Assembly (NCBI GenBank): GCA_965644315.1
Contig: CBFFRQ010000013.1
Coordinates: 434,001 to 498,000, forward strand
Direction: 5' to 3'
Source of the DNA: Caecitellus pseudoparvulus
Taxonomy: Eukaryota; Protista; Bigyra: Bicosoecida
DNA: 64,000 bases
In this document: piece after piece, positions 22,181-27,934 of the stretch
Position numbering within the stretch: the stretch's first letter is position 1
How the letters are laid out: the number at the start of each line of letters is the position of its first letter
Translations under genes and position numbers: made by a program
Notes under the pieces: generated by a model
What the model was told of the DNA's origin: nothing
The model's input: the letters and a program-made list of their open reading frames with translations, nothing else
Databases searched by the model: none

Positions 22181-24422
22181 ATGCCATCACAGGGCCGCTT
22201 GCAAGCTGCCCGGGCGCGTAGCAGGGACAGACAAGCCGCTCGTGCGGCTGCCCGCCTCGCCGAGGTTTCGGGGGAGCGTGGAGCTCGAGGGGGGCGTGAA
22301 GGGCGCCGACAAGCCGAGTTTGACCAGGCAGCTGGGGAACGAAGCAGGGAGAAGCGTGCACGGCGCAGGCGCTCTGGGGAGTCAGTATCTGGATGGGGCG
22401 GCGAAGCAGAGCAAGGAATCCCAGCTTCGCGAGCGTTACCGGGCAAGCAGAGAGCTCGCAGTGGAGGCCGGAGCAGGCAACGTGCTGGAAGCAAGCCTCG
22501 CGCCAGTCCGCATGCTCAACAGGCAGTGGAAGGCGAAGCGCGCGCCGCGAGCGGGCGGCCTGCTTATGTATCTGTGCCGTATCCTTCGAAGAGAGTGATC
22601 TTGAGCGATGGAAGTTCCGAGGTCGGGCGCAAAGAGGACAGGCAGCCAGCTGGCATTGCGGAAACTGCTTCGCGGCCTCCCCTGCTCGCTGCTCTGTGGC
22701 GCAGGAAAGACAGTAGGGCGATCATTGTACTCTCAGCAGCTGTGATGCTCATTGCATTGTGCGTGGGGGGCTTCCGACTTACGCGAGATTTCGTCGCAGT
22801 CGCCTCAGCAGGCAAGTGGGCTTCCAGCAGCAAAGTGTGGGTCACCGTTGCAAGGCTGCCTGAAGTCTGGCAGTCACAGCGTGCGACAGGTTCCATCTGT
22901 GAAGAATCGGCATCAACAGCAGGCCCACAGCCCACTTCACGCGGGGTTGGGTGCTTGCCCTGCCCACAGGGCGCGTTGTGTGCTAGAGGCCGGGTGCAGG
23001 CTTGCCCTGCGCCGCAGGTTGTGAACGCAGCGCAGGCAAGTTGCACGGACTCGAAAGACACCATCAAGCTCGCGGATGCGCTTGGAGTGGAAGGGCAATA
23101 CTTCATTCGGTGAGCCAAGGAGCTCTTGAGTCCACGCCTTGCTGTGCTCCATTCCACCATGTGTGCACTTTCTCGCTGCACTTCTCGCCTCGCTTGCAGT
23201 CGGTTGGCAGGGGCTGCGACGTGCTCTAGCACCTTTACAGGACAAGACGCAGGGCTAGGGCACCCGCTTCCAGCATCTGCTCCTGACAGTGAGCTGTCTA
23301 TGGTAACCAAGGTGCTGGAGTCGCAAGCGTGCGTTGCAGCGTCCGGATAGGGTCCAGCTCACCGTTCACGGCCGGCACATATTGCTCCTCCACAGGCGCC
23401 TGCATGCGACAGCGAATACCTCAGCAAGTACCATGACCAGGGCTGTCTCCTTGGCTGTGGACGGTCTGCGGCTTGGTGCCGCGCCTGCAGTCACTTGGCA
23501 AGCGAGGAGCAGGCTGTTCTCGTGCCGTGACGGACACGCTATTCGCCCAGCGCTGTGCATTCTGGAACAGGACTTGGGGGGCGCTTTTTCAAGCTTTTCC
23601 GCCATGGTGAGTGAAAAAAGTTGTACGGCAGGTCCGGCGGGGGTCCCCCTAGCCACGGCTGTTCACCGCCTCGCTGAGGCGGCTCAACGCCCCGCGGCCC
23701 AGCAACCTGCCACCGAGCACACACACTGGGATTTCGTTTTTGACGCCGGCTCGCGCTCAGCAGCGGGTGGAAATCCCAGGAGAAAAGCCACCCTCACGTT
23801 TGGAGGAGTGCTCCACTCCTTGCCGGTTAGGGACTCAGCCGCTGGGACTGATCGAAAAAGTGGCGCGCAGGCTTGCGCGCGCGTTTGATTTTGAATGCCC
23901 GTGATTGCGCTGTGTCCACCCCGCAACTCAGCGGGCGCCATGACGCACCCTCGATTTGCGCGCCCCCTTTCACAGGTGCTCATTTGCTGCTTGCTGGGCA
24001 TCGGCATGGCATCATCAGCTCTAAATGCGTACAGAGTGCATCGTGCCACCCCCGAGCTGCGCAGGGTGATGCAGCGAGCTGCTCTGGCGTACATTGAACA
24101 GCGCCATCGCAGGCTGGGGGAACCCACGCCCAAGAACGACGCGAAGAGTGTTGCGCTGCGAGTTGCTCTGGAGGCGCAGCCGCCCCCTGGTTCTGCTGCA
24201 GACGCTATTGGCAACACGGCCCGAGCGAAGCTCGTGGTGCAAAGCTGGGACTCTGTCGCTGAGGCGCTTAGCGCACTGCCATGCCTGGCAAGCACAGTGG
24301 TCAGCACAACGAAAGGCAACGTCCCAGCTTGGGCCTACACGGTGCGAGACCACGAGCCCGAGGGTTTTGTGAACTCTGTCCTCGGCTCAACGCCATCCCA
24401 GTTGCGTGGGCTTTGGACGTAG
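22181..24422 (+). CDS. Man1/Src1 (Heh1, MSC-domain) inner nuclear membrane protein; about 4 exons
   Basis: Basic N-terminus, TM1 (AIIVLSAAVMLIALCVGGF), luminal CLPCPQGALC...C...C, TM2 (VLICCLLGIGMASSAL), C-terminal winged-helix-like 'SWDSVAEALS...KGNVPAWAY'; last intron 23607-23975 is phase 0. Confidence 0.65.
23614..23853 (-). ncRNA. Candidate telomerase RNA, intronic and antisense to the Man1/Src1 gene
   Basis: Template CCCUAACC (23832-23825); pseudoknot GGGUGG/CCACCC + CUUUUCUC loop + CUGGGAUUU/AAAUCCCAG preceded by CAAAAACG; core-enclosing helix; distal hairpin; T6 run at the 3' end; 5' end approximate. Confidence 0.75.
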
Positions 24423-24470: not shown

Positions 24471-26326
24471 CTAAGCCATGCATTGGTTCCCCACACGCTT
24501 CACAACCACGTTCTGAGCCGCAGCGTGCAAGTGAGCTTGTGGTGAGCTGGGGCTGACTCCCGCAGCTTCCAGCTGGGCAGCCGCTGTCATGAAGGCAAGG
24601 GAGCTCTTGTACTCATCGATGTTGATGTAGCAACCCTGCAGGTGTCTAGCCGTAGCTTCACCATCCCCTTCACTCGCACCCTTGATCCCGAACGCTTCAC
24701 GTCCATGCAGCATGCGTCTGTTGTTGAACATGACCAAGTCGCCTGGCTTGAGCTTGAACTTGATGAACGCGCCAGAGTTTGGAGCACCCGAATTGGCATA
24801 CCGCTCCCTCCCTTTGATCACACGTGCGAATGCTGAGTAAGCTTCGTAGTATGCTTCCACAGCTGATGGGTGCACACACAGCGGCCCCTCGAACACTGGG
24901 GCCCAACTCACGGTGGTGATGGCCCCCTCCCGGCTGCCAGCGGGCAGGGGGCGGTGCAGCTTGTCCACAGTCGCTGTTGTCACGTGGGGTCGCTGATACA
25001 CCATGTGCACCGGGGTGTCCCGCGCATAGTGCACCTTGTGCAGGGTGGCTGGCACGGAAGCAAGGATGTCGAAGGCAGCGGGGCAGATCTCGCGGAACTG
25101 CTCGGCCACTGCCATGACGTCCATGAGAGTGCTCTCTCCTCCCTGGATAGCATCACCGAACTCCACACAATGTAAGAGCTGGATGCCAGGGGGAGACTCG
25201 TAGTACGCCAGGTCCTGGTGCAGCTCCAGGCCAAGCTGCGAGTAGGCCAGGTTCACTGGGTCCTTCTGTGCCTGGACATCAAAGACGTCGCCGTAAATGG
25301 TCCCCATGACGGGCGCCACAAGCTCTGCGACCTCCGCCACAGTGCCCCGTTCACACGGCACATCCTCAATCACGATGGCTCCCTCGCTGCGTACAAGGCA
25401 AGGTGTGGCATGGACCGTGCGCTGAGCAGAGGCGGTCGCTGGAAACGCACGCATTCATGAGAGAAAGTGCCTCCAGCAGCCCTTGCTTGCTATCAGTCAG
25501 TTTTGCGAACGGAACTCGGGAGGGGCCCGCCTGCGTGGAGGAGTCGGAGCCATCGGATGCTCCGTCGCTGCCGGCTGGGCTGCCAGCTGAGGGGGGCACT
25601 TGGAACAACATGCGCACTGCATCCCAGTCCACCGTCGGAGCCTGCTCCTCAGGATACTCCCCAGGCTCACTGCTCTCGAGCTTGGCGCCATCAAGGGGGC
25701 CAGGGCTCCCGGGTTGGGCAGTCCCAGCAGCCCGTGCCGATCTGTGCTCAAGGGAGGCCTCCGAGTAGTCATTGGCGCGGAGCCATGGGACGCTGAATGT
25801 GCTTTCTCCACCCCCTTCCCACTTGATGTGCAGGCACTGCTGCCCATGCTCTGCTGCGGTCTCAGCTGACTTGATGCCAGGCCGAAGCGGCATGGACCAT
25901 GGGGGCATCAACCGTTGGCCGGTGCCTGAGTGCAGAAACTCAGGGCTGTGGTGCCACAGCCACCGGGCGTGGAAGAAAGACTCCATTCCGTTGCTCCACT
26001 TCATCCACACCCCCTTGGGCTTGTGTGGACTGCACAGCAGGAGAGAGTTTCAAGTGCAGTGCACCTGCGGAATATATCCCACACAGGCAGGGAGAATGCA
26101 AGCCAATGCTGCGAGATGTCGACCTACCCAGCAGGTGGGACGTCATCCAAGACGTCTGTTCGTGCTAGGACGCGTTGTAGTTGTTGAGAAACAGCCCTCC
26201 TGGGTGCTCTGCATCGGCAGGCATAGCGGCGCTTGCAGATCATTCGCCCAGGGCGTCAGCAGGCTTCCAAGCTCACCCCGTTGCTGAACCAGCTGCTGCT
26301 CGCACTCTTGACATGGATGCCATCAT
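24471..26326 (-). CDS. Gamma-butyrobetaine/trimethyllysine dioxygenase family (TauD fold, 2OG-Fe(II)); multi-exon, 5' end uncertain
   Basis: GBBH-N-like 'KWSNGMESFFHARWLW...TGQRL', NLAYS...LHQDLAYYESPPGIQLLHC (HxD), FNNRRMLHGR, RHLQGCY. Confidence 0.85.
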
Positions 26327-26641
26327 AACGCCCTTCACGCTAGAAACGTTCGTCAACCTGGCACTGCCTCGGTGCAAGTGAACGTGGCTCCGCGTTTCAG
26401 CTGCGTTGCCAGGATGCGAGGGACGCCACGCAGTTGCAACACGGGCAATGAATGGCGAGCGCAGCCAGCAAACCAGTCAGCTAATCAAACCAAACCAAAC
26501 AATTGTTTACACGTGGAGTGGTTAGTTTTCCCCTCGGTGCGTTCTTTCCCCTTGGAGGGGCTTTACATGCTGCAGTGCCTGTGCCAAGTCGCAGCGACTG
26601 GCCAGACCGTCGGAATCGACAGGAGCGCCAGACGGAGCAGG

Positions 26642-27934
26642 ATGGAGGGCCTCATGTCTCTGTACCAAGCAAGATTCGACCAGGCTGTCATGCAGTTCAG
26701 CATTGCTGCGCGTGCTGATGCCGGGATGCCTCTCGCTTCTGCGCCAGCAGTCATGCCCGACACCCTCGCACTTGCGCATTGTCCGCCTGAGGTTTTGGAG
26801 CAGGTGGCGCAGGCCACTGCGCAGCTGAATACGGCCCTGAACACGGGGAGCGTGATAGCTTTGCCGGTAGGGGATCGGAAGCGCCCCAGAACGCAAGTCA
26901 AATCGACTCAAAGCACGTCCGCCTTGGTCAGCAACGCAGTGCCGAAACGCCAGCGACGCTCCACGACGGCGGCAGCACAGTGCGCCCTGCTGCCGACCGG
27001 GGCAGCGAGGAATGTAGACGGCGAGAACCTTGACCAACTCCTACAGCAGCTGTCTGAAGCAGTGGAGATGCCGCTGTCTGCAGTCGCGGCAGTGGCAGGG
27101 CCCGAATTCGGCACGGACACTGCCGGCAGCACAACGCGCAAGGTCACCCGCACGTCTGTGCTGTCTGGGGTCGACTCTTTCATTTGGAGGTATGCGCATG
27201 GGGTGAATCGCTTGGAAGGAACGGACATGCAGGAGCCCCCGCTGACGGTCGCCGAGCACTTGGGCGGCAACCCTGGAGCCACGCTGACCAGCACGTCATA
27301 CACACTGGCCGACGGCCACGTGGTCAGAGCTGTGCCCCTGCACGCCCAGGACCCACCCTTTACACAAGTACACGATGACATTCTGCGGGAAGTCATGGCA
27401 GTGTCCCCACACCTCCCTTGGGATGACATCACGGCGCTGGTGGTGGAGCGTTTCAAGAGAGCCGGGCTGAGTCTGCCGGGCACTTCATCGCGGGTGATCA
27501 AGCGCCGTGCCCTGGCCCTGCAGAATTCCAACCGCCGAGGAGGTGTGTGGACGGAGGCAGAAGACGCCCAGCTCCGGTGGGTCCTAAACCGCATGGTGGC
27601 AGAGACCCGCCCGACGTCCTTGGGAGGGGAGGGCTCCACCCGCCACGACCGACACGTGCAGTGGGCTGATGCAGCATTCCGCCTCATGTGGCGCACAGGC
27701 AAGCAGTGCCGGGACCGCTGGTATAACATCCTTGACCCCGACATTCGCCGCGGCCCTTTCACCGACGCTGAGCTGGAGACCATGCTTGCAGCCTACCAAC
27801 GCCTCGGCAAGCGGTGGACCGACATCTCCAAACTTATGCCGGGCCGCAGCGAGAGCATGGTCAAGAACTGGTTCATGGCCCGGGAGCGTGCCAAGCGCAG
27901 GGAGGCGCAGCGTGCTGCCCGCTCGCGGGGTTGA
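26642..27934 (+). CDS. Myb transcription factor (R2R3, with a possible degenerate third repeat)
   Basis: GVWTEAEDAQL...WADAA...RTGKQCRDRWYNILDPDIRRGPFTDAE...LGKRWTDISKLMPGRSESMVKNWF. Confidence 0.88.
   Translation: MEGLMSLYQARFDQAVMQFSIAARADAGMPLASAPAVMPDTLALAHCPPEVLEQVAQATAQLNTALNTGSVIALPVGDRKRPRTQVKSTQSTSALVSNAVPKRQRRSTTAAAQCALLPTGAARNVDGENLDQLLQQLSEAVEMPLSAVAAVAGPEFGTDTAGSTTRKVTRTSVLSGVDSFIWRYAHGVNRLEGTDMQEPPLTVAEHLGGNPGATLTSTSYTLADGHVVRAVPLHAQDPPFTQVHDDILREVMAVSPHLPWDDITALVVERFKRAGLSLPGTSSRVIKRRALALQNSNRRGGVWTEAEDAQLRWVLNRMVAETRPTSLGGEGSTRHDRHVQWADAAFRLMWRTGKQCRDRWYNILDPDIRRGPFTDAELETMLAAYQRLGKRWTDISKLMPGRSESMVKNWFMARERAKRREAQRAARSRG

Follow-up and report, generated by a model that had tools for sequence, protein, structure and literature searches.

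The locus at 23607-23975 in the genome of Caecitellus pseudoparvulus raises the question of whether a spliced intron of a protein-coding gene carries, on the strand opposite to that gene, the telomerase RNA (TR) of this organism. The locus lies in the window analyzed here, a stretch of 64 kb contained in a eukaryotic assembly of 30.6 Mb. Here it is proposed, with a probability of about 0.92, that the element is the TR gene of C. pseudoparvulus, on the basis of its motifs, their conservation and covariation, the promoter geometry, its uniqueness in the genome, the telomere repeat, the presence of a telomerase reverse transcriptase (TERT) and the delimited intron. Its transcription, polymerase, exact ends, base triples and activity with TERT are predictions from these features.

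Host gene, intron and orthologous loci

The host gene occupies 22181..24422 of the plus strand, with exon ends and starts at 23109/23200, 23328/23396 and 23606/23976 and an uncertain start codon. The intron of 369 nt at 23607..23975 (plus strand, GT..AG, phase 0), as delimited in the initial annotation, is supported by frame continuity and by a spliced contig of the RNA-type run X1, which skips exactly 369 nt; spliced joints also define introns at 23110-23199 and 23329-23395. The encoded protein has two membrane helices flanking a Cys-rich segment, and its C-terminal domain is of winged-helix type. An exon-by-exon Pfam search gave a weak MSC match (E 0.19), MSC clusters of the Atlas were matched at 0.79-0.84, and the winged-helix-type fold matched MAN1 weakly. 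The gene probably encodes a MAN1/Src1(Heh1)-like protein of the inner nuclear membrane, every match being weak. In yeasts, members of the MAN1/Src1/Heh1 family anchor telomeres at the nuclear envelope; that a member of a telomere-tethering family hosts a TR is probably a coincidence.

Downstream of the host are a gamma-butyrobetaine-dioxygenase-like gene (24471-26010) and a Myb gene (26372-27934). The dioxygenase of the relatives (~61-63% protein identity), together with the last exon of the host, led to syntenic contigs, and the order of host, dioxygenase-like and Myb genes is kept in L007 and L009; through this synteny the orthologous loci were found. The element is antisense in the same host intron in four relatives, being full in L007, L009 and L053 and represented by its 5' part only in L052, so that four full orthologues, including that of the window, and one partial orthologue are compared below. 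The T run at the predicted 3' end of the RNA ends 2 nt from the host splice donor here and 36-51 nt from it in the relatives.

Template, pseudoknot and conservation of the core

All parts of the element described below are on the minus strand. Every motif read there in the initial annotation, including the template, P2, the linker, P3, the GC arm and the U6 run, was recovered in its place. The template CCCUAACC (23825..23832) consists of a 6-nt repeat plus a 2-nt alignment region, is complementary to more than one unit of the TTAGGG arrays found at contig ends, and loses this complementarity on both sides of 23825-23832. The octamer sits within a 22-nt invariant block and is itself invariant in the four full orthologues and in the partial one, as far as its contig reaches. 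The genome has pure TTAGGG telomeres, with CCCTAA arrays at contig starts in telomeric polarity, which bears out the telomere repeat that had been predicted from the template; the start of contig C8 has 869 perfect units in the correct polarity. Two further observations were made at these ends: a telomeric tract of 420 nt lies 10.6 kb inside the end of contig C5 (L062:578-1000, corresponding to C5:10578-11000), and C5 and C8 have nearly identical sequence directly beneath the terminal tract.

The crossed pseudoknot described initially is present in full, both helices being completely complementary (6 and 9 bp) in an H-type topology (23726..23793). P2 is formed by 23793-88 and 23770-65 and P3 by 23779-71 and 23734-26, with a pyrimidine linker at 23787-80 and an A-rich loop at 23742-35, and two-sided changes are found in both helices. 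The crossed P2/P3 arrangement and an A5 loop are kept in the relatives; the sequence of P3 differs among them, and the linker is U-rich in three of the four full orthologues, with two U to C changes in L053. The close likeness to the human pseudoknot described in the initial annotation is thus partly specific to this species. In plant and algal TRs the pseudoknot is built on the same general pattern (PMC8287931). The second loop of the pseudoknot contains a small bulged hairpin (23745..23761), a feature new to the present analysis, which has G-C here where three relatives have A-U. Another hairpin, between the template and the pseudoknot (23804..23820), differs in sequence in each lineage and is self-complementary in every one.

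In 3000 dinucleotide shuffles of the intron, an 8-nt template arose by itself in 13 and in none with such a pseudoknot after it; likewise, no other template-like 8-mer within the 64-kb window is accompanied by such a pseudoknot. The support comes from conservation rather than from stability, because the folding energy of the whole sequence is in itself unremarkable (z -1.57). Core identity between lineages is 0.76-0.88, compared with 0.46-0.48 for shuffles, and the 3' part is 55-79% identical, while the promoter spacer and the other flanks are at or near the shuffle level. When the structure is applied to the three full relatives, 92.9% of cells are paired and two-sided change is seen at five pairs; the covariation score is reached by 2 of 500 shuffles and slid controls drop to 34-51%, results to be read with the caveat that related sequences can beat shuffles without structure and that there are four full sequences in all. 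Adding the window reveals further two-sided changes in P2, P3 and the small hairpin of the pseudoknot loop. The comparison with the orthologous intron of relatives, proposed at the outset as a check, therefore finds the template and the pseudoknot kept, with compensatory changes.

Promoter and expression data

A motif of consensus SCCCRCTG, corresponding to the upstream element (USE/PSE) of a type-3 promoter, lies at 23929..23936, and a TATA-like box at 23888..23895, 41 nt from the USE start. The same motif is found 67-73 nt before the U1, U2, U6 and SRP RNAs of this genome; U6 and SRP also have a TATA box ~41 nt after the USE start, and U1 and U2 are without TATA. Each of the five TR loci has the USE, followed after 40-41 nt by a TATA or TATA-like box (canonical in L052 and L053) and after 103-104 nt by the template, with USE-to-template spacers that are unrelated in sequence. 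The comparison of the upstream region with small RNA promoters, suggested in the initial annotation, thus yielded a USE and a TATA-like box at the spacing of U6 and SRP. TATA-dependent Pol III promoters of this pattern have been described for green algae and humans (PMC8287931). Taken alone, the USE+TATA pattern shows no genome-wide enrichment, with 16 sites against 28 in the control, and U6 departs from it by a single base; the weight of the promoter argument is therefore on position and on the orthologues; one of the 16 sites has a template, and this is the TR locus. As for the other small RNAs, the USE is inverted at U3 (L019) and U5 (L022), in both cases 54 nt from the Rfam start, unlike the forward USE at 67-73 nt of U1, U2, U6, SRP and the TR, and U4 and MRP show no clear USE. 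The genome also encodes SNAPC3.

Four low-depth contig sets, probably of poly(A) type, include the spliced host transcript, and no read or contig in them covers the TR; its absence from data of this type is expected (PMC8287931).

Predicted transcript ends and template boundary

The promoter geometry places the predicted start near 23868 (range 23868-23863). Counted as far as the T run, the transcript would be ~255 nt long here (23614..23868) and 250-255 nt across the four full orthologues. Compared with the ~240-nt span proposed initially, the 5' end probably lies ~15 nt further upstream. The putative Pol III terminator is a T6 run (23614..23619), with T5 in the same place in three relatives; the SRP gene of this genome appears to end in T5 and U6 ends in T7. 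Two La-motif proteins are encoded in the genome (L056 and L057), one of them apparently with La and RRM domains and genuinely La-like. La-type proteins bind the TR 3' end in plants and ciliates (PMC12972900), and by analogy these two are candidates for binding the 3' end of the predicted TR.

Immediately before the template, a P1.1-like hairpin (23835..23851) has 6 bp and a 5-nt variable loop, ends 2 nt before the template, and keeps 6/6 pairs in all five lineages, being conserved without two-sided change. A long-range helix between the segment 5' of the template and a downstream strand, proposed in the initial annotation, does exist as 10 bp here, at a higher energy than the local hairpin, and 8-10 bp, many of them G-U, can form in all four full orthologues. 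When each is enforced, the hairpin is better by 2.7-9.2 kcal/mol in all four. The second pairing that had been proposed, with 23718-13, has by inspection no counterpart in the relatives. From these models, the local P1.1-like hairpin is more likely than the long-range helix to be the template boundary. The extreme 5' end would then close the core with the strand after P3, as a P1c-like helix in which 23860..23868 pairs with 23726-23717; this helix has 6-7 bp in all four full orthologues, with one two-sided change in L053, and is weakest in this species.

Between this strand and the boundary hairpin lies an invariant internal T5 (23855..23859) followed by CG, at +9/+10 of the predicted transcript in all orthologues. 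It could terminate Pol III, because the SRP RNA here appears to end at T5. Pol III would have to pass the internal T5, unless the mature 5' end is downstream of it. The terminal T5 runs of the relatives and of SRP are followed by G, the internal one by CG; a context-dependent read-through by Pol III is speculative. A sub-case of the TR reading, and not exclusive of it, is that the same RNA has other ends or another fold, starting after T5 (~23854) or being trimmed there, with a long-range helix of the vertebrate P1b type as boundary. This is judged unlikely, although such a start removes the terminator problem and the long-range helix, possible in every full orthologue, is part of the unenforced minimum-energy fold of the window. 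A start at ~23854 needs a USE distance of 82 nt, outside the 67-73 nt of U1, U2, U6 and SRP, and leaves T5 and the 5' helix conserved although upstream of the start; moreover, the hairpin model is lower in energy throughout, and in the window the strand that would pair at long range lies elsewhere than at the homologous position.

The 3' domain

The 3' domain (23625..23713) has a closing stem, a long arm (23698-23652) and a short hairpin (23649-23640) arranged as a three-way junction, which is the minimum-energy fold in three of the four full orthologues (window, L007 and L053). The short hairpin has 3-4 bp, and a GGG/CCC stem is invariant without covariation. The corresponding loop is UGUU in three relatives and GGAC in this species, whose loop is without the conserved U residues of animal-type P6.1. 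A CR4/5 three-way junction with P6.1 is known from animals and filamentous fungi and not from plants (PMC8480181, PMC11892584). There is moderate evidence, from modeled folds, that the 3' domain resembles CR4/5 with a P6.1-like hairpin. The fuller proposal, in which a stramenopile lineage has a Pol III TR that lies antisense within an intron of a gene for a nuclear-envelope protein and has as its 3' domain a functional CR4/5-type junction with an equivalent of P6.1, is tentative and rather doubtful; if true, a CR4/5-type domain would predate the split of opisthokonts and Diaphoretickes or would have arisen twice.

Uniqueness and identity of the element

For a covariance model trained only on the relatives, the sole match in the genome is the element in the window (103 bits, E 4e-30), and a DNA search gives one copy of the TR. 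A better TR candidate, named initially as an observation that would count against the locus, did not emerge from the covariance model, the DNA search or the USE+TATA sites. Rfam, in gathering and E-value modes, gave no match to a TR model; because the TR families of Rfam are clade-specific, this excludes those families and not TR function. The tRNA scan returned nothing. A pattern scan of metagenomes gave one true match (L031, with the same sequence as L007) and seven chance matches, and the same kind of scan gave no match in viral and prokaryotic genome collections. A derivation of telomeric LINE 3' ends from the TR was considered and rejected: in 30 kb from two chromosome ends the TR model scores nowhere above 13 bits, and genome-wide neither the model nor the DNA search has a match outside the TR locus.

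TERT has a single match in the genome, on contig C77 (L026:3540-7670), as a frame of 1389 aa with the usual reverse transcriptase motifs and related to human and Tetrahymena TERT. This frame looks intronless, has FYITD as T motif where FYxTE is usual, and is only ~40% identical to its nearest relatives. On another contig, a divergent full-length small-subunit rRNA (C213:27842-29337, 451 bits) was also noted, possibly mitochondrial or bacterial.

It is very improbable that the element is another, so far unfamiliar, structured Pol III RNA in which the template-like octamer is coincidental and the real TR lies elsewhere. The octamer stands inside a 22-nt invariant block, whose invariance could have another cause; against this, it matches the actual telomere repeat, the template, boundary hairpin, pseudoknot with pyrimidine and A-rich loops, enclosing helix and distal domain follow each other in TR order, and U1-U6, SRP and MRP are already located elsewhere in the genome. 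A cis-acting structure of the host pre-mRNA on the plus strand, such as a splicing regulator made without a separate transcript, would suit an element that fills most of a conserved intron whose spliced host transcript is the sole one seen, and is hardly credible given that the conserved USE, TATA and T run are all oriented for the minus strand and that many conserved pairs are G-U there and become A-C mismatches on the plus strand.

Proposed mode of action

In the TR reading, SNAPc would bind the USE and, with the TATA-like box at the U6 spacing, direct RNA polymerase III, which would transcribe ~250-255 nt opposite the strand of the host pre-mRNA and end at the T run before the host donor. 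The subsequent steps, taken from known TRs, would have the RNA bind TERT, the 8-nt template align with the terminal GG of the telomere, and one TTAGGG be added per round, with copying stopped by the hairpin 2 nt upstream of the template. The pseudoknot, probably with U-A.U triples between the pyrimidine linker and the A-rich loop, would be one TERT-activating domain, and the 3' three-way junction may be the second. Mouse TR also has an 8-nt template with a 2-nt alignment; the element here shares the template size and alignment and differs in permutation, promoter type and 3' domain. Since the alignment is of 2 nt, low repeat processivity is predicted.

Comparison with known telomerase RNAs

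The element shares with animal and filamentous-fungal TRs the TTAGGG template and the pseudoknot type (PMC8480181, PMC11892584), and, in its predicted fold, resembles the CR4/5 of these groups (P5, P6 and P6.1) in a three-way junction whose hairpins are one long and one very short. It differs from them in having a Pol III-type promoter and no H/ACA or Sm domain, and from their P6.1 in a short stem of 3 bp without covariation; three relatives have in the loop the U residues that are essential in animals, and this species lacks them. The 3' junction can be used to test at what point the CR4/5 junction originated. As in Ustilago, whose TR is processed from a protein-coding mRNA (PMC9564094), the element overlaps a protein-coding gene; unlike that TR, it is antisense, intronic and provided with its own promoter, and so is not derived from the host transcript.

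The closest resemblance in testable features is to the Pol III TRs of plants, green algae and ciliates and the Blastocystis candidate (PMC8287931, PMC12133305), which share a USE and TATA like those of U6 and SRP, an end at a T run, a P1.1 boundary hairpin, a short GC-rich P2, a longer P3, a pyrimidine linker of 6-8 nt, an enclosing P1c and a distal stem. Plant, ciliate and Blastocystis TRs were defined by an architecture that the element shares (PMC8287931), and its size is within the range of 235-347 nt of plant TRs (PMC8480181). From the TRs of plants, ciliates and Blastocystis it differs by the conserved antisense intronic nesting, the additional hairpin in the pseudoknot loop and the internal T5, and also by the predicted distal three-way junction with a short P6.1-like hairpin, which plant TRs are without (PMC8480181). 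The screen for Pol III TRs counted overlap with annotated genes among its points of manual rating (PMC8287931, PMC12133305); if the TR reading is right, such genes can lie concealed on the antisense strand of introns, and screens based on promoter and template may give them a lower rank. The candidate of Blastocystis, itself unvalidated, is the only stramenopile TR in the literature searched (PMC8287931), and the family described here would be a second and independently supported one, with five lineages, a covariance model and a cognate TERT. By its testable features the element belongs with the Pol III TRs of plants, ciliates and Blastocystis, and its reading as a TR supports the view that the production of TRs by Pol III is deeply conserved across Diaphoretickes.
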